In this document: positions 7,206 through 16,511 of the stretch, piece after piece
Layout: every line of letters starts with the position of its first letter
Position numbering within the stretch: the first letter of the stretch is position 1
Source: Blastocladiella emersonii ATCC 22665
Taxonomy: Eukaryota > Fungi > Blastocladiomycota
NCBI GenBank assembly: GCA_025594325.1
Contig: JANHCV010000009.1
Span: 1,674,001-1,738,000, forward strand
Direction of reading: 5' to 3'
DNA length: 64,000 bases
Notes under the pieces: model-generated
What the model was told of the DNA's origin: nothing
The model's database searches: none
The model's input: the letters and a program-made list of their open reading frames with translations, nothing else
Made by a program: the position numbers and the translations under genes

Positions 7206-10200
7206 TCACAGCAGCGTGGCGCCGGACGCGAGCGACGACGTGGACGTGGTGGCCGACGGCGCCACGAGCATCGACGAGGACGCGCTCGTGACGTTGTTGT
7301 TGTGGCCGGGACGGGCCGACGTTAACGACGACGAGCCGGCAGCGGTGCTGGGGCTCGCAGCCGCCGCGGCGCGGTGCGCCATGGCGACGAGGTGGTCGTA
7401 CTCGCCCGACTCGCGGCACATGTGGTTGAAGATGGACTCGGGCTGGTCAATGAGCTCGGCGGGCGAGCCAAACTCCATGACGCGGCCGTGGTCGAGGACG
7501 AGGATCCTACGAGGTGCGAGTGAGCGTTGTTAGCATGCTGCAGTTACATCCAGAACTAGACTCGAAAACACGTACTTGTCAAAGTCGGCGACGGTGCGCA
7601 GGCGGTGCGCAATGACGAGGATCGTCGAGTCGGCAAACTCGGACCGGATCGTCTCCTGGATCTTGGCGTCCAGGTCGTGGCTCACGTTCGCCGTGGACTC
7701 GTCCATGATGATCACCTTGGACCGCCGCACCAGCGCGCGCGCGAGCGTGACTAGCTGGCGCTGGCCCTGCGACAGGTTCTTGCCGCCGGCCGTGACGGCC
7801 GAGTCGAGGGTCCACGCGCTCGTCGACTGTGCCGACGCCTGCTGCTGCGCCGTCTCCTCGGACGCGTTGCTGCTGGACGAGGAGGACGAGGAAGAAGACT
7901 GGACGGCCGACTCGTCGCCACTACGCTGCTGCTGCTGCTGTTGCTGCTGGGCCGACTCGAAAAAGTGCACGCGCTCGAGCGCGTTGATGCACGTCGCGTC
8001 GTCGTGCTCGCCGAGCACGTCGAGGTTGGACCGCAGCGTGCCCTCGAACAGGACGGGGTCCTGCGGGACCATGGTGACGCGAGACCGCAGCACGGCGAGG
8101 TCGAGGTCGCGCGTGGCCACGCCGTCAATCTCGATGACGCCGCCCTCGGGCTCGACCATGCGCAGCAGCGTCAGCGCGAGGGACGACTTGCCCGAGCCCG
8201 TCCGGCCGACCACCGCGAGTTTGGTGCGGCCGGGCACCAAGAAGGAGATGCCGCGGAGCACGGGCGACGTGGACGACGGGTACCGCATCGTGAGGTCGCG
8301 CACCGTCAGGTCGCCGCGCGTCGGCCAGTGCACGGGCTGGTCGCCGCCCGTGGCCTCCTGCTCAATGGCCATGAGCTCCTCGAACCGCTCGACCGAGTTC
8401 ATGTTCATCTGTTGGAGGGTTGGTTGGATCGTTAGTTTGTGTCGTTTCGTTTGACGGCGAACGAGGGAGAGAGAACACGACGTACCTCCATCATGGCGTG
8501 GATGCGGACGAGCCACAGGCACGAGTCGGAAATGGTCATGACCCACGTCAGCGCGATACCGGCGGTGCCGGCGTACAGGCCGCCCGAGATGAGGATGGCG
8601 AGGCCGCACGCCATGATGATGACGTTGCTGAGGAAATCGACGCGGATGCTGAGCCAGCGGTTGGCGAGCCACAGCGCGAAAAAGGGCCGGTGGTGGTCGT
8701 CCATGCGGGCGTGCGCGCGCTGCTGGAACCTGGCCTCGGACCGGAACGCGCGGATCACCGAGGTGCCGCCCGTCGTCTCCTGGTACACCGAGTACACGGG
8801 TGAGCGCGTCACCGACTCGAGCCGCTTCAGCTCGCGACTGCTCGCGAGGTAGTACCCGGCAATGAACTTGTACATGACGCCCAGGGGAGCCACGAACGCG
8901 AGGAACAGCGGGCTGATCACCGAGACCATGATCAGGATGATGAGCACCGACGAGGAGGCCCAGGCGACGCCCGTCAGGGTCCAGATGACCTCGCGGTCAA
9001 TGGTCTGCATGTCCTTGGAGAAGCGGTTGGTGAGGCGGCCGAGCGGCGTCTTGTCAAAGTAGCCGATGGGCGCGCGCATGATGCGGTGCAGGATGCCCTC
9101 GTGCAGCTTGACCGAGGCGCGGAGCGCGACAATCATCTCGAGCACGTTGAACCCGAACTGGAGCACGATGTTGACGGCGCACAGGCCCGCGTACACGAAC
9201 ATGTAGAAGGCGAGGTCGACGTGCGGGGACGACGAAGCGGGCGCGTCGCCGTCGGCGAGCATGACCATCGAGTACAGCGACTTGGACGCGTGGTTGGCGA
9301 CAAACACGTTGGCCTGCGAGTACGACTGCGCCCACATCTTGAGCCACCAGTCCTGCGCCACGTTGAGGCCCTGCGGCAGGATCAGCCCGAGCATCATGAA
9401 GAACCACCAGATGAAGCCGCCCGTCGCCGCAAAGTACGCCGCGTACACGGACCACTCGACGGACCCCGTCGCCTTTTCCTCGTCCTCGACGAGGCGGTGC
9501 ACCTTCTTCTCGGGTTCAGCGGCACCAGCGGCCGCCGCGTCCGAGTCGCTGGTGCCCAGAACGGCTTCGGCGGCAGCGTCGGCGTCGCCCTGCTCGGGCT
9601 TGGCCTTGCCCTTGCCCTTGGCGGCCTTGGTGTCGGAAGCCTTGGCCGTGAGCGACGACTCGGAGGGCTGGCGCGAGAGCGCTGGCGTCGCGACCTCGAG
9701 CAGGCCGTCGGCCTCCTCGTCGAAACCCTGCGCCGTGAGCTGCGCGGCAACCTCCTGGATCGAGGAACCCGTGGCCGCAACGCTGCCGTCCTTGACGTAG
9801 ACAATGTAGTCGGCGCGCGGCGCAACGAGCCCAACGTTGTGCGTCACGAGAATCCGGGTCCGGTCCTTGAGGATATCGCCGCAGATGCACTCGTGGAACA
9901 GGTGGGCGGCCGTGGGCGCGTCCACCGCGCTCAACACATCGTCGAATTGGTATGCGTCGACGTTCGAGTAGACGGCGCGCGCGAGCGAGATGCGCTGGCG
10001 CTGGCCGCCCGACGCGTTCACGCCGAGGGCGCCGAGCTCGGTCATGTCGCCGGCGTCAAAGATCTCGAGGTCGCGCGTGAGGGCGCACGCCTTGATGACG
10101 GCCGCGTACCGCGCCGCGTCGAACGGCGCGCCGAACGTGATGTTGTCCTTGATGGTCGCGTTGAGCAGCCACGCCTGCTGCGGCACGTACGCGACGGGCA

Positions 10201-12606
10201 CCTTGGGCATGAACACGGACCCGGAAACGAGCTCGAGCTCGCCCAGCAGCGCGTGCAGCAGGGACGACTTGCCCGAGCCCGTCTTGCCCAGGATCACCGA
10301 AAGCTTGCCCTTGGGGAACTTGACCGACACGTTGCGCAGCTGGAACGCCGACGACGCGTCGTTGGTCGCCACGGCGGTCTCGCCGTCGACCACCGGGGTT
10401 GTGTCGGCGACTTTGATCTTGCTGGACAGGAGCGACGTGGTCTCGTCGGCGACGGCCTCGTTGAGCGCTGTCGTGGACGAGGAAGCCGAGAGCGTCGCCA
10501 CGGCGGCAGCAGCCGAGTCGGAGGACGAGGTACTGGAAGACTCGCCGACCGGAGCGCGGGGCCACTGGAGCGTCGCGTCCTTGCACCCGATGTAGTAGTC
10601 GCCGACGGCATGGTCGAACGAGCCGTAGCCGGCCGCGCCCGAAGCCGTGGCGGACGTGTCGATCGTGTAGTCGACGAAGTCGGGACCGTCGAGGTACGAC
10701 TGGATGCGCAGGATCGACACCTTGGTCTCGAAAAAGCGAATTAATTGGTCTGGTAGGTCCCAGAGAGGCATGCGGAGGACCGAGAAGAGCGAGATGGCCG
10801 TGAAAACGGTGGTCGCGTCGAGGTCGTGGCCGGCGATACCCGCGTAGGTCATGAACGTGCCCATGGTGACGAGCGTCGGGACGGCGTGGTACAGGACGTT
10901 GACGGACGACATCATGATCCAGTAGTGGCGGATCCGATTGACCTCGTTGTCACGCAGCGACTGGATGACGGCCGTGAACTTGGGCTCCCAGGCAAAGTAC
11001 TTGAGCACGCGGATCCCGCCGAGCACCTCCTGCATCTTCTTGACGCGGGCGTCGGTGGCCTCCATGACGAGCTCCTGCTTGTTCTCCATGATGGTGCCGA
11101 GCCACGACTGGATCGGGACCATGACGCACAGGAACGAGACACCGAACAGCGCCGACCACCCGAGCAGCGCGTACAGGGCCGTGATGCACAGCACGATCTG
11201 CATGGGCGTGGTGATGAGGAACTGGAGGTAGGCAACGTAGTCGAGGATGCGGCCGACGTCCGTGCCGACGAGCACGTTGACGTCCTGCTCCTTGGTCTTG
11301 TCGGCCTTGGACTTGGGTTCGCCGTCGGCCTTCTTGGCGGGCGCCATGTACGGGTTGCGCGTGAGCGTCTTGCGGTACAGCAGCGAGTTGAGGATCGCGC
11401 GCACGCGGGTGCCGACGCGGCGACCAGTGAAGAACATCTGGCCAGAGCAGATGGACGAGAGCAAGTTGCCGGCGAACATGCCGAGGACGTAGAGGTACGG
11501 CGTGTATGCGGGCACGTCGGCGGTCTGGCCGTCGAGGTACGAGAGCAGACGGTTCAGGAAGTAGGGACCTAGCAGGGCGGGGTGAACGTCGTTAGCCAAC
11601 GCTCCACCTCGTTTCGAAGCCGAGTTGACGTACCGCTGAAGGACAGGATGGTGACGCAGAGGCCCATGAGCATCTGGTAGGCGAGCAGGTACTTGACGGT
11701 GAGCAGGACGGCGACCCAGGTCGGGCGGCCAGGTTTGGCGTTGGTCGACAGCTCGCGGATCGCGGACACAGACTTGTCCTGCAGGGCGAGGTCCCACACG
11801 TCGGCGAGCTCGAGCGGCTTCTTGTAGCCCTGGTGCACGAGCGGCGTGAACCACGAGAAGGTGGCGAGCTGCAGGACCGAGGCGAACGGCTCGAGCGACA
11901 TGGTTGGGCCGGCAGCCTCACCGGCATTCTGCGACGACGCGAGCAGCAGCTTCTGCTTGACGTGGGTGATGCGGTTGTACTCGAGCGTGCTCCAGATGAA
12001 GGCGGCGAGGACGAGCGAGGCCTGGGCGATCGGCAGCATGTGCTCGGGCGCGAGCTGGGTGGCGCCGAGCAGGACCGAGCGCAGGTTGACGAGGGCGGCG
12101 ACCAGATCGACGAACAGGATGGCGACGAGCGAGAAGATGCGGGAGCCGCGCATCGAGGCGGCGGCGAGGGTGGCGGCCGCGGCAAAGACGGCGTGCAGGC
12201 CCTGGACGGCGGCCTCGTTGGCGTCGCCGGCCGTGACGGCGGCGTTGAGCGTGCCGGCAACGAGGGCGGCCGCGTAGGCGCCGAGCGTGGCGGCGAGCAG
12301 CTTACGCAGCAGCGACAGGCGGGCGTTGACCTGGGTCAGGGCGGCGGTGGCGGCGAGCGGGACGACGGTGCCGCCCTCCATGGCGGTATCGCCGAGGTCC
12401 TCGGACGGGTCGTCAACGGGCAGCTGCATGTAGGCGGGCGCATCGCGGGCGCGGTAGCGGAGGCGGTAGGCGGCCCAGACGAGTGCGCCGGCGCCGAGCG
12501 GGGCGGCGGTGCGCACGACCCAGGCGAGGAAGCACGGCGACAGGTCGTCGGGGCGGGCCGGGTCGGACGGCGACCAGTGGCCCGAGGGGCATAGCAGCGA
12601 CGACAT
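7206..12606 (-). CDS. ABCC/MRP-type ABC transporter (YBT1/BPT1/YCF1-like), 4 exons, about 1729 aa
   Basis: Exons 12606-11634, 11568-8486, 8408-7576 and 7506-7206 total 5190 nt in frame. TMD0-like N-terminus. NBD1 has GKTGSGKS, SGGQRQR and DDVLSAVD. NBD2 has GRTGSGKS, LSQGQRQL, IIMDESTA and IAHRLRT. Confidence 0.93.
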
Positions 12607-13429: not shown

Positions 13430-15139
13430 TCACCGTCTCCGCGATGCGCTCCGGCTGCGCCGCGCCGCGAGCACCTTGGCCGCGACCGCCGCCGCCGCCT
13501 CGGACCGGCGCCGCTTGGCCTTCTGCCACGCGTCCTTGAACCGCCGGTCCATGACCAGCGACAGCACCGGGTTCCACACGCAGATGAGCGACGCGAGCGC
13601 CCCGCTGACCGCGTCGAAGTGCGGCACCACCGGCCGCCCCGTCACCCACGCCCACAGCAGCTGCACGTCGTACATGCCCCACGACACAAAGTACGTGCCC
13701 ACGATGGCCACGCTGCGCCGCATCAGCATGAGCCCGAGCGACTGCGCCTCGCGCTGCGGGCCCTCGAATGACGCATCCGCCGCCGACTCGTCGAGCGAGC
13801 TGCCGCGGCCGACGGTTGCCCCGCTCGTGCTGCTGAGGCTGCCGCGTGGCGTTGTTCGACGCGGCGACCCAGATGACGCACCACCGCCGCCGCCGCCGCC
13901 GCTTCCACCCGAGGATGACGCGGCAGTCGACCCGCTGAGCAGCGGCCGCGTGCCGGACCCGCCCGACCCGGACGCGGGCGAGTACGAGTCGCCGAGGTCG
14001 CTCGCCGCGTCCGACTGCCACGACCCTTGGCGCCGCGGCAGGCCCGCGACGTTCGTGTCGACAGTGAGGAACTGCAGGTGCCCGTTGCCCGACGGCGGGC
14101 TGTGCCCGAGCGGGAGCGGCGGCTGCGGCTGCGTGTTTTCCTGCAGCGACTGCAGGACGTACGTGGTCAGCGGGCCGACGGCTTGCACCACGGCCGCGTC
14201 GTCCCGCTGGTCCTGCTGCTGCCGGTGCTGGATCAGCCGCTGCACGCGCCGCAGCGTCGAGCCCGGCGCGGGCGCCTGCTCGTCGATCCCGGGCATCGTG
14301 ACCTGTCCGTGGCTCGTGCGCCGGCTCGACCCGCCGCCGGCACCGCCGCCGCCATTGGACAGGAGCAGCGCAACCGAGCTCCGGACGCGTGCCGAGAAGC
14401 TGCCGCTGCGGTGCGACCCGGACCGCGACACGCGCCGGGACCAGTTGGACGCCGACTCGGCGAGCGCGCGCTGGTTGCGGTAGAAATCCGTGATGATGCG
14501 CGAGAAGGCGCCGACCAGCGTGACGGCCGTGACGTTGAGCACCGCGAAGATGATGACCTGGAACGTCACGTCGACGGGCACGCGGCTCGCCCAGTCGTAC
14601 GTGCAGTAGACGCCCGACGGCTGCGGCGCGTACCCGACGGTCCACGACTCGATGGACACGCCGAACGCGGCGGCGAGCGGCGGAAAGAGGAAGGGGAGCA
14701 CCGCCATGAACGCCGACGACACCCACAGGCCCGCGACGAGCAGCACGATGGTGCTGTGCGGGACCACCTTCTGCACGACGATGCGCATGTACCGCTCGTA
14801 CGTCATGAGCGAGATGGTCATCATGGACGACACCACGGCAATCTCGTTCATGGTGCCGTTGAACATGCACAGCGACGGCAGCGTGCGCAGGATCGTGCGC
14901 GGGTCCTCGTCCGCGAGCCGCGGGTCCGACCGGTAGAAAAAGTAGATGAAAAACGACGTGGGAAAGTTGACCGTCACAAACAGCAGGTCCGACGCCGCCA
15001 GCGACATGATGAGCAGGTTGACCGAGTTGCGGTACAGCTTGCCGCGCACGCCCAGGAACAGCAGCGTCCAGTTGAGCAGCGACGCCGTTCCGCCGATCAG
15101 GCACAGCCCGAGCGCCACGGGGCCCACTTGGTAGTCCAT
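13430..15139 (-). CDS. Class A (rhodopsin-like) GPCR, type-2 opsin-like, lacking the Schiff-base lysine, with a very long ICL3
   Basis: Seven hydrophobic segments. TM1 N, TM2 SLAASDLL, TM3 C...YERY, opsin-like ECL2 GYAPQPSGVYCTYDW, TM7 LASLICVWNPVL and helix 8 MDRRFKDAW. Single exon. Confidence 0.85.
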   Translation of the reverse strand: MDYQVGPVALGLCLIGGTASLLNWTLLFLGVRGKLYRNSVNLLIMSLAASDLLFVTVNFPTSFFIYFFYRSDPRLADEDPRTILRTLPSLCMFNGTMNEIAVVSSMMTISLMTYERYMRIVVQKVVPHSTIVLLVAGLWVSSAFMAVLPFLFPPLAAAFGVSIESWTVGYAPQPSGVYCTYDWASRVPVDVTFQVIIFAVLNVTAVTLVGAFSRIITDFYRNQRALAESASNWSRRVSRSGSHRSGSFSARVRSSVALLLSNGGGGAGGGSSRRTSHGQVTMPGIDEQAPAPGSTLRRVQRLIQHRQQQDQRDDAAVVQAVGPLTTYVLQSLQENTQPQPPLPLGHSPPSGNGHLQFLTVDTNVAGLPRRQGSWQSDAASDLGDSYSPASGSGGSGTRPLLSGSTAASSSGGSGGGGGGGASSGSPRRTTPRGSLSSTSGATVGRGSSLDESAADASFEGPQREAQSLGLMLMRRSVAIVGTYFVSWGMYDVQLLWAWVTGRPVVPHFDAVSGALASLICVWNPVLSLVMDRRFKDAWQKAKRRRSEAAAAVAAKVLAARRSRSASRRR

Positions 15140-15536
15140 GATTCCGCTGAAAATTGATTCATGGAACTAGAGAGCACACACGCAAGGCCCGCGCTTGTGC
15201 GCAGCTCGCCGCGTGGCCGGGCGTATGTGTCCCATGGTATCGCTGCATGGAGTGTGTGTCGATGCATTCTCTCTCCGCTTACGTCGCGGAGTCGTCAAAG
15301 AGCGTGGGTCCCTTTCGGGCTCAGGGGAAGCGAGAGCGAGGGCGATCGCTCGGCCCGACGCGCTGCGCCACTCTGCGGGTGCGAGACGCGTCGCCTTTCC
15401 GCCACGTCAAGCAGCTCACGTGCGGCGCCGCAGAAGGTCGCCGATCGCCCTGCTCTCGTCAGCACGCCTCCTCCTTCCCCATTCTCTCTCCCCTCAACCA
15501 ACCCAGTATCTGCAACGTATCAATCACGAAGCAACC

Positions 15537-16511
15537 ATGCGCTTCGACCTCGCGTTCCGCCTGTTCATGGCGCTGCTCGGCGTGTGCTTTGGCGCGAGCG
15601 CCGTGCACGCGCTCTTCTCGGCCAAGTCGGGCATGCCGCACTTCACGCAGTCGACCTTCAAGTCCGAGGTCATGGCGACAGAGCAGACGACGCTGGTGCT
15701 GTACTACGCGCCGTGGTGCGGGTACTGCAAGCAGTTCTCGCCCGCGTACGAGGCCGCGCGCAAGAAGCTCAAGGGCTACGCCAAGGTCGGCGCCATCAAC
15801 TGCGACGAGGAGCGCCAGCTGTGCGCCGACGCCGGCGTCCAGGGCTTCCCCGTCGTCAAGGCCTACTACACCAACCCCAAGACCCGCAAGCGCGTCGCCG
15901 TCGAGTACCAGGGCGACCGCTCCACCAAGTCGGTCACCGACTTTGCGCTCGACCGCCTGCCCAACTTTGTCAAGCCGCTGCGCGCCGGCACCGGCGGCAT
16001 GGCCCTCGACAAGTTCTACGCCCTCGAAAATGCCACCCTGCCCAAGCTCGTCGTCGTGAAGCCGCCCGCCAAGGCGCGCAAGGCCACCGCGAAGCTGCTC
16101 AAGGCCCTCGCCATCGACTACCACTACCGCGTCGTGTTCGGCGAGGTCACGGGCGCCGCGGCCGACGACGCCGTGTACGCCGACTTTGGCGTCGCGCCCA
16201 AGGACACGGCCGTGTTCGTGATCCCCGCGGCCGGCGCCGGCGACATGGTCAAGTACGACGGCGAGATCAAGCAGAAGCCCCTCCGCGCCTTCCTCGACGC
16301 CCACGCCGCCAAGGAGCCCGTCGGCAACAAGCGCGCGAGCAAGGCGGGCAAGGGCTCCGCGTCGTCGTCCAAGACTAAGACGAAGTCGAAGTCCAAGACG
16401 GCGGCGGCCGCGAGTACGGCTACCGCCACCGAGACTTCGGCCAAGCCGTCTCCGACTGCGACTGCGACCAAGAAGCCCAAGATCAAGGCGCCCGCGCACG
16501 ACGAGCTGTGA
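15537..16511 (+). CDS. Protein disulfide isomerase family (MPD1/PDIA6-like), ER-resident
   Basis: Signal peptide MRFDLAFRLFMALLGVCFGASAVHA, thioredoxin site YAPWCGYCK, GVQGFP, and C-terminal HDEL. ATG in CAACCATG context at 15537. Confidence 0.9.
   Translation: MRFDLAFRLFMALLGVCFGASAVHALFSAKSGMPHFTQSTFKSEVMATEQTTLVLYYAPWCGYCKQFSPAYEAARKKLKGYAKVGAINCDEERQLCADAGVQGFPVVKAYYTNPKTRKRVAVEYQGDRSTKSVTDFALDRLPNFVKPLRAGTGGMALDKFYALENATLPKLVVVKPPAKARKATAKLLKALAIDYHYRVVFGEVTGAAADDAVYADFGVAPKDTAVFVIPAAGAGDMVKYDGEIKQKPLRAFLDAHAAKEPVGNKRASKAGKGSASSSKTKTKSKSKTAAAASTATATETSAKPSPTATATKKPKIKAPAHDEL

Follow-up and report, generated by a model that had tools for sequence, protein, structure and literature searches.

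Within a 64,000-nucleotide stretch of the Blastocladiella emersonii ATCC 22665 genome (GenBank assembly GCA_025594325.1, contig JANHCV010000009.1, positions 1,674,001 to 1,738,000 of the forward strand), hereafter the window, we analysed a minus-strand gene whose product is a class A (Rhodopsin-family) G-protein-coupled receptor (GPCR). The receptor sits in a clade composed of fungal sequences only, outside the clade of the lysine-bearing animal opsins, and, judging from its residues, it cannot bind retinal covalently. It is probably a chemical sensor and not a light sensor. The reading that we favour, with a confidence somewhat better than even, is that of an orphan class A GPCR belonging to a Blastocladiomycota-specific family inside a receptor clade of zoosporic fungi, working as a ligand-gated chemoreceptor through a heterotrimeric G protein.

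An intact gene for a class A receptor

The features to which the text refers are given below in window coordinates, with the evidence for each in brackets. TM stands for transmembrane helix, ECL and ICL for extracellular and intracellular loop, GC3 for the GC content at third codon positions, and pLDDT for the predicted local distance difference test score of the structure model.

13430..15139, minus strand: complete single-exon GPCR gene, 569 codons plus stop (open reading frame, Pfam 7tm_1, GC3, Allomyces orthologues)
14420..15139, minus strand: residues 1-240, very short N-terminus (~4-7 aa) and TM1-TM5 (AlphaFold helices, column statistics)
14858..14860, minus strand: Asn94, codon AAC, position 3.28, the bovine E113 counterion site (HMMER alignment to bovine rhodopsin)
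14579..14665, minus strand: ECL2, residues 159-187, predicted beta-hairpin (DSSP strands 170-172 / 179-181)
14621-14623, minus strand: Gln173, E181 equivalent in ECL2 (six residues before ECL2 Cys179)
13766..14419, minus strand: ICL3, residues 241-458, Ser/Gly-rich, disordered (pLDDT, composition, site scan)
13430..13765, minus strand: residues 459-569, TM6, TM7, helix 8 and basic helical tail (AlphaFold helices, column statistics)
13589..13591, minus strand: Ser517, codon TCG, position 7.43, the bovine K296 Schiff-base site (HMMER alignment to bovine rhodopsin)

The frame is uninterrupted over its 569 codons and starts at the first ATG after an in-frame stop; a 569-aa protein model (P0001) is on record for it. 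GC3 is 0.96 in the N-terminal half, 0.90 in ICL3 and 0.97 in the C-terminal half, against ~0.62 in both flanks. Since it is high throughout the frame, the ICL3 insert is translated and is not an intron, and the whole frame, ICL3 included, is coding. Furthermore, the open reading frame is not a product of chance, because orthologues exist in Allomyces at 38-40% identity. The gene is confirmed as real and intact.

The product scored 55.6 bits (E 7e-15) against the Pfam profile 7tm_1 (PF00001; gathering cut-off 30.5 bits), and the alignment spanned profile positions 2-259 of 260, with a long insert separating TM5 and TM6. The AlphaFold model, computed from a 95-sequence alignment (an earlier 4-sequence alignment gave a pLDDT of 55), contains seven TM helices and a helix 8, with pLDDT values of 90-98 in the TM helices. 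TM1 to TM5 are placed at residues 5-32, 39-71, 88-122, 128-158 and 188-240, TM6 at 459-500, TM7 at 506-530, and helix 8 with the tail at 532-568. Structural comparison with VIA-align matched the model to many class A structures at Z 26-29, with a root-mean-square deviation of 2.3-3.2 A over 270-299 residues. The core residues of class A are kept: N23 (1.50), D51 (2.50), C91 (3.25) with C179, W139 (4.50), E115-R116-Y117 (the ERY motif), W487 (6.48), alongside which Tyr 6.51 is also retained, and N523-P524 (7.49-7.50). Cys91 and Cys179 are the two cysteines of the usual TM3-ECL2 disulfide, and helix 8 carries R533-F534-K535.

An earlier note on this DNA, made from the letters and open reading frames alone, had proposed an animal-type opsin-like GPCR, in which the cysteines of the bovine C110-C187 disulfide, ERY and helix 8 are retained while CWxP becomes SWGM and NPxxY becomes NPVLS. 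The 7tm_1 score, the seven-helix model with its helix 8 and the residues listed above bear out that a zoosporic fungus has here a receptor of the animal type (class A), and the two altered motifs were read at residues 486-489 (S-W-G-M) and 523-527 (NPVLS).

These altered motifs are part of a wider replacement of the usual activation microswitches, with Thr204 in place of Pro 5.50, Met489 in place of Pro 6.50 and Ser527 in place of Tyr 7.53. Column statistics were computed on 15 core family members, 35 members of the fungal clade, 39 opsins and 29 other animal receptors. Pro 5.50 was found in 0/35 fungal-clade rows, and Pro 6.50 and Tyr 7.53 each in 0/15 of the core family; conversely, the three residues were present in 33-39/39 opsins and in 23-27/29 other animal receptors. 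They are typical of class A, though not required for membership. By these column counts, their absence is a trait of the whole Blastocladiomycota family, which, being uniformly without the three activation residues, offers a test case for class A switching.

Retinal-chemistry positions

The alignment of the family profile to bovine rhodopsin (HMMER) equated Asn94 with E113 and Ser517 with K296. Helix arithmetic gave the same result: Cys91 plus 25 is Arg116 of ERY, a spacing equal to that between bovine C110 and R135, Ser517 lies six residues before Asn523 of the NP motif, and Gln173 lies six residues before Cys179 of ECL2, as bovine E181 does before C187. The substitutions K296 to S, E113 to N and E181 to Q, which the earlier note had derived by hand, are thus reproduced.

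The protein holds six lysines in total (34, 124, 535, 540, 542 and 555), all of them cytoplasmic. When all were checked, none was found in the membrane or outside, and none could act as a compensating lysine in the pocket; nor does the receptor have an acidic counterion at 3.28 (Asn94) or in ECL2 (Gln173). Because Ser517 occupies 7.43 and all six lysines are cytoplasmic, a retinal Schiff base cannot form, and the corresponding claim of the earlier note stands. Likewise, no TM7 lysine was found among 12 7tm_1 loci of the B. emersonii genome.

The same positions are conserved within the family. Position 3.28 is Asn in 12/15 core family members and Tyr in 33/39 opsins, and the ECL2 position equivalent to E181 is Gln in 14/15 core family members. 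Position 7.43 is Lys in 39/39 opsins and in 0/35 fungal-clade members, and it is Ser, Ala or Gly across the core family. This conservation suggests that Asn 3.28 and the ECL2 Gln are residues with a job of their own and not decayed counterions.

Relatives in fungi

A word search returned only Allomyces proteins. Among these, AMAG_00698 and AMAG_02198 of A. macrogynus are direct orthologues, with 38-40% identity overall and 47% over the TM core. They share with the B. emersonii receptor the ERY motif, NPxxx, the signatures of TM2, TM3, TM6 and TM7, the motif of ECL2 and the great length of ICL3. They differ from it in having Gln and not Glu at 3.33 and Leu and not Met at 6.50, in an ECL1 that is 10 residues shorter, and in an N-terminus of ~55 residues, against ~7 residues before TM1 in B. 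emersonii. Given this last difference, an unrecognised upstream coding exon is possible.

An exhaustive HMMER search was then run with a profile restricted to TM1-TM5 and built from the B. emersonii receptor, AMAG_00698 and the nearest paralogue in the same genome. At E <= 1e-3 it matched 1707 proteins, of which eight reached E <= 1e-30. Down to ~1e-18, all the named matches belonged to Blastocladiomycota (Sorochytrium, Allomyces arbusculus, Coelomomyces and Paraphysoderma), and further down came the chytrids Boothiomyces, Kappamyces, Chytriomyces, Powellomyces, Gaertneriomyces and Spizellomyces (SPPG_00350). The A. arbusculus protein GGF31_003225 (P0002, 968 aa) begins with ~430 residues that the A. 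macrogynus orthologues lack and that resemble a separate multi-pass membrane protein; it is probably the fusion of two adjacent genes in one model.

The receptor is of a kind already published: the fungal Rhodopsin branch has been catalogued since 2012, and the B. emersonii protein is one more uncharacterised member of it. Both Allomyces orthologues are listed as 'Rhodopsin (7TM1)' by Krishnan 2012 (PMC3251606; Table S1/Dataset S1), where the fungal Rhodopsins are described as having ERY and NPxxx and as clustering apart from the 13 human subgroups. With ERY at 115-117 and NPVLS at 523-527, and grouping with published fungal members, the B. emersonii protein fits that cluster. The name 'type II opsin-like GPCRs' has also been used for this group of zoosporic fungi (Ahrendt 2017, PMC5410147; Galindo 2022, PMC9616733).

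As regards the B. emersonii genome itself, Leonard 2022 (PMC9730499) counted 54 PF00001 genes, and our six-frame search gave ~15 7tm_1 matches. The other matches lie mostly in a cluster on contig 16, with two more on contig 18, and some form pairs 3-5 kb apart (L010/L011, and L003/L009 on contig 18), which suggests tandem duplication. Long third loops of low complexity were seen in all the paralogues that were read, and in several of them DPxxx takes the place of NPxxY.

The third intracellular loop

ICL3 is ~218 residues long (241-458) and predicted to be disordered, with a pLDDT <50 over most of its length and one predicted helix at 295-320. In the counted residues 236-465 (n=230) there are 41 Ser and 39 Gly, and the loop holds seven RxxS/T sites. 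Adjoining the predicted helix there is an island (residues 321-331, window 14150-14180) in which Gly-Pro-Leu 322-324, Leu329 and Ser331 are invariant between B. emersonii and Allomyces, the rest of the loop being unconserved. The island may be a docking motif. The length of the loop had been called atypical, a description that does not hold within this group: long Ser/Ala/Gly-rich third loops recur in the Allomyces orthologues and in the B. emersonii paralogues examined.

A ligand-gated receptor as the favoured reading

The residues expected to line the pocket form a conserved set that is specific to the family, with Asn at 3.28 and 3.32, Gln/Glu at 3.33, Asn at 5.48, Asp/Asn at 6.52, Asp at 7.35 and Ser/Ala/Gly at 7.43. 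In the B. emersonii receptor the pocket-equivalent positions of TM3, TM6 and TM7 are polar and conserved (Asn94, Asn98, Glu99, Asp491, Asp509 and Ser517), Glu99 (3.33) being Gln in most relatives. The TM5 face is aliphatic (Ile196, Ile197, Val200 and Leu201), with the polar Asn202 (5.48) on the same face. Such a mixed set of residues would not indicate a purely hydrophobic ligand, and the proposal of a receptor for a hydrophobic ligand finds no support here, several of the pocket-equivalent positions being conserved and polar.

We propose that a diffusible ligand, at least partly polar or amphipathic, would enter under the ECL2 lid and contact the family-specific pocket residues, and that the receptor would then activate one of the heterotrimeric G proteins via ERY, ICL2 and helix 8. 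Candidate partners are plentiful, with 22 six-frame G-alpha matches at ~8 or more loci of the genome. The long Ser-rich ICL3, with its basic kinase sites, could serve as a phosphorylation or docking platform for desensitisation or scaffolding. With Pro 5.50, Pro 6.50 and Tyr 7.53 missing throughout the family, activation probably involves movements that are not, in their details, those of animal receptors.

Some points weigh against this proposal. The receptor is without three microswitches that nearly all animal class A receptors have, and that it activates G proteins in the canonical way is therefore assumed. The pocket was assigned by equivalence to rhodopsin positions and not from measured geometry. 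Moreover, the comparison with animals included only 29 non-opsin receptors, of which the named ones are aminergic (octopamine Oamb, dopamine D2-like), and the phylogenetic tree described below is unrooted, which leaves it unable to place the fungal clade as sister to the opsins as opposed to sister to all the sampled animal receptors.

The first of these points leads to a different reading, in which microswitch loss disabled activation and left a receptor-shaped protein that does not signal through G proteins and is either constitutive or a scaffold acting via ICL3 and the basic tail. The absence of the three residues from 15/15 core family members, when they are common in opsins and in other animal receptors, is what such a protein would be expected to show, and an ICL3 with a conserved island and many phospho-site motifs would suit a scaffold. 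However, conservation across five genera extends to ERY, to Asn 1.50 and Asp 2.50, to Trp 6.48 and Asn-Pro 7.49-7.50, and to the Phe of helix 8, the conserved residues of the extracellular pocket argue for ligand binding, and G-alpha genes are plentiful in the genome. We regard this reading as unlikely and retain that of a ligand-gated chemoreceptor, the deorphanisation of which would be worthwhile in a tractable and phototactic organism such as B. emersonii.

Resemblance to animal opsins

Animal opsins are the most similar animal receptors, by small margins only. Among the best 150 matches of the TM1-TM5 profile, 40 carry Lys 7.43, mostly together with Tyr 3.28 and the ECL2 Glu; TM7 lies outside the profile, and the number of opsins expected by chance in such a top 150 is uncalibrated. 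The named opsin matches include peropsin/RRH, melanopsin, opsin-3, opsin-5 and a Nematostella opsin. The first non-fungal match was a fish opsin-like protein at 83.8 bits, and the amine-type receptors that could be placed in the tree (P0024 and P0026) scored ~66 bits. In addition, two relatives have been automatically named 'Opsin-5' and 'Melanopsin' in public annotation.

The comparison with solved structures gave a similar picture. The single-sequence search of the PDB was weak, reaching the endothelin B receptor at 1e-3; chitinase matches in the same search were spurious, arising from ICL3. With the family profile, bovine rhodopsin scored 33.6 bits, level with the QRFP receptor, and the NPFF2 receptor reached 33.0. 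In Foldseek the first five places were taken by invertebrate rhodopsins (jumping-spider and squid, 6.5e-6 to 1.6e-5), followed within a factor of four by EP3, NPFF2 and NK1. VIA-align gave ties, with the TSH and FSH receptors at Z 29.4 and 29.1, rhodopsins at 27.6-28.7 and prostanoid receptors at ~27. The description of the protein as an opsin-like GPCR therefore holds narrowly, on the strength of the 40 lysine-bearing proteins among the top 150 and of the invertebrate rhodopsins at the head of the Foldseek list.

The specific likeness is found in ECL2. Here AlphaFold and DSSP predicted a beta-hairpin with strands at 170-172 and 179-181, and the loop carries the motif Tyr170, Gln173-Pro174, Gly176, Tyr178-Cys179, Asp182-Trp183 and Ser185. 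Counted from the cysteine (C), the general pattern is Tyr (C-9), Gln/Glu (C-6), Pro/Gly (C-5), Gly (C-3) and Cys on the N-terminal side, and Asp (C+3), Trp/Tyr (C+4), Ser/Thr (C+6), Pro (C+9) and Asp (C+11) on the C-terminal side. It is common to the fungal clade and the opsins, where it occurs with Glu for Gln in 34/39; in the 29 other animal receptors it is much less pronounced. The claim that the opsin-like ECL2 plug is kept is thus upheld by both the predicted hairpin and the shared motif. A sequence pattern so specifically opsin-like bears on the origin of opsins.

Compared with the animal opsins of known structure (6i9k, 2z73 and 1f88), the B. emersonii receptor has in common the ECL2 hairpin and pattern, the TM3-ECL2 cysteine pair, E/DRY, Trp 6.48-Tyr 6.51, NP and the helix 8 Phe. 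Unlike them, it is without Lys 7.43, without Glu at 3.28 or in ECL2, and without Pro 5.50, Pro 6.50 and Tyr 7.53; it has Val and not Gly at 3.36 and a 218-residue ICL3, and it falls outside the opsin clade. Other class A receptors from outside the animals have also been found to be most similar to opsins. These are the Rhodopsins of the choanoflagellates S. macrocollata and S. punica (PMC12716839), which were not identified among our matches and which we compared by their published description: they are without K296, and one of them has the same K296S substitution as the B. emersonii receptor, but they are without the E/DRY motif that the latter keeps.

Phylogeny and the question of a former opsin

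The careful maximum likelihood (ML) tree was inferred under LG+C20 PMSF from 70 complete sequences, with the three trait columns left out, and is unrooted; support is given as ultrafast bootstrap / Shimodaira-Hasegawa-like approximate likelihood ratio test (SH-aLRT). The B. emersonii receptor grouped with AMAG_00698 and the JGI protein P0008 at 100/99, within a Blastocladiomycota family of 12 rows at 100/98. This family is part of a 28-row fungal clade at 99/94, which also includes SPPG_00350 and the chytrid sequences. All 22 lysine-bearing opsins formed a group of their own at 100/98, from which the B. emersonii receptor is excluded. Quick trees of 64 and 103 rows agreed with the careful one. 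When the 12-row family and the opsins were forced together, the cost was 33.8 log-likelihood units, with p 0.07 in the approximately unbiased (AU) test, a grouping that is disfavoured and not formally rejected. Membership of the opsin clade, which the earlier note had offered as a check on its proposal, was not recovered.

The resemblance to opsins, which lies chiefly in ECL2, is best explained by common descent from an old receptor design of the opisthokonts, to which the animal opsins later added the retinal lysine; the B. emersonii receptor would then not be the remains of a lost light sensor. Coherently with this reading, the 2025 eLife study (PMC12716839) reported that K296 and E181 are absent from holomycotan Rhodopsins and that the light-sensing residues arose in stem metazoans, and Ahrendt 2017 (PMC5410147) reported that the chytrid and Allomyces homologues other than that of S. 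punctatus are without the lysine.

A bolder version of this reading, to which we give a low probability, is that the fungal clade, notably its Blastocladiomycota family, is the surviving sister lineage of the animal opsins and preserves a pre-retinal state with a diffusible ligand. If this were true, the ECL2 lid would be the same, Gln and Ser would occupy the sites at which opsins later acquired the Glu counterion and the Lys, and deorphanising the receptor would show what the ancestor of the opsins sensed before light. The tree cannot decide the sister question, because it is unrooted and contains three large groups only.

We consider it distinctly improbable that the receptor is instead a degenerate opsin, that is, that the family ancestor bound retinal via Lys 7.43 and sensed light, and that the lineage was put to another use after losing the lysine and the two counterions. 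The observations which could suggest this are those already given: opsins are the top animal relatives, with Lys 7.43 in 40 of the top 150 even though TM7 is not in the profile, they share the ECL2 motif, their invertebrate representatives make up the Foldseek top five, two relatives are annotated with opsin names, and the AU test did not formally reject their grouping with the family. On the other hand, the lysine occurs in none of the 35 fungal-clade members and its place is taken by Ser, Ala or Gly across the family, the opsin and fungal clades are separate and each is well supported, and opsins score little better, or no better, than peptide, prostanoid and glycoprotein-hormone receptors. 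The published dating of the light-sensing residues to stem metazoans also stands against it. As Asn 3.28 and the ECL2 Gln are conserved in the family as well, the data hold no sign that retinal chemistry was once present and then lost. The only published fungal lysine, that of SPPG_00350, does not change this, since Ile stands there in the public model, the Lys codon being placed within a canonical intron.

The published lysine of SPPG_00350

Ahrendt 2017 (PMC5410147) credits S. punctatus SPPG_00350 with the retinal lysine (K320, six residues before NPVLF), in a sequence taken from a model that had been 'amended' by one inserted base. The public model has Ile at 7.43 and no lysine anywhere in TM7. 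A Lys codon six codons before the NP motif exists in another frame only, and it falls among the final ten bases of a 65-nt stretch whose splice signals are GTAAGT (donor), CTAAT (branch site) and CAG (acceptor). The region is the following:

L014:2640-2745, gene nt 1140-1245: SPPG_00350 TM7 intron region (canonical splice signals)

The spliced TM7 is hydrophobic and aligns with all relatives, whereas the read-through version would be polar. Furthermore, the Gaertneriomyces relative of SPPG_00350 also has Ile at 7.43. The case that the published lysine is translated intron sequence is strong but unconfirmed, being built on splice signals and alignment; if it is correct, the retinal lysine is absent from all fungal class A receptors.

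SPPG_00350 and the B. emersonii receptor belong to the same fungal clade (99/94) and have the class A core and the opsin-like resemblance in common. They differ in subclade, as SPPG_00350 groups with the Gaertneriomyces sequence and the B. emersonii paralogue H9P43_002725, and the receptor studied here, unlike SPPG_00350, never had a candidate lysine.

Sirenin and light as possible stimuli

The earlier note had named a terpenoid gamete attractant such as sirenin as a speculative ligand. No sirenin receptor was identified in the literature that we searched, orthologues of the receptor exist in Allomyces, the ECL2 lid and the aliphatic TM5 face (Ile196, Ile197, Val200 and Leu201) would suit a lipid-like ligand, and prostanoid receptors are among the best structural matches. 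Against this, the TM3, TM6 and TM7 positions of the pocket are conserved and polar. B. emersonii has retained the gene, and, to our knowledge, neither gametes nor a sexual stage are known in this species. The family is also found in Sorochytrium, Coelomomyces and Paraphysoderma, which, with Blastocladiella and Allomyces, brings its distribution to five genera. Finally, the action of sirenin has been linked to CatSper-type calcium channels, homologues of which are present in Allomyces (bioRxiv 10.1101/230292). On this evidence sirenin gains no support as the ligand of the B. emersonii receptor and is very improbable; such a role is still conceivable for the Allomyces copies alone.

Least credible of all is a light sensor using non-covalent retinal or another chromophore. 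Such a sensor could be suggested by retinal production and phototaxis in B. emersonii (PMC9730499, PMC9616733) and by a pocket of opsin size that retains Trp 6.48 and Tyr 6.51, but the receptor has no lysine in the membrane or outside and no acidic counterion at 3.28 or in ECL2, phototaxis in this fungus is explained by the type I rhodopsin-guanylyl cyclase BeGC1 (PMC9730499), and no natural animal-type opsin lacking the lysine is known to sense light (PMC5410147).

Gene surroundings

The neighbours of the gene, an ABC (ATP-binding cassette) transporter and a thioredoxin-domain protein, are unrelated to receptor signalling. No synteny with Allomyces was seen, the neighbours in Allomyces being SPX-EXS, RSN1 and a WD40 gene. 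Immediately upstream of the receptor gene, at window 15140-15160, a pyrimidine run ends in CAG 10 nt before the start ATG; it could be the acceptor of an intron in the 5' untranslated region.

The transporter, of the MRP type, lies downstream of the receptor gene (window 7530-12606, minus strand). It is split over at least three open frames, one with ABC_tran, one with ABC_membrane and ABC_tran, and one with the N-terminal membrane region, which presumably reflects introns. The thioredoxin-domain protein (window 15195-16511, plus strand) is divergently oriented with respect to the receptor gene and separated from it by a short intergenic gap. It ends in HDEL and is likely a relative of the protein disulfide isomerases of the endoplasmic reticulum; its real start is probably the ATG near 15540, which precedes a signal-peptide-like stretch.

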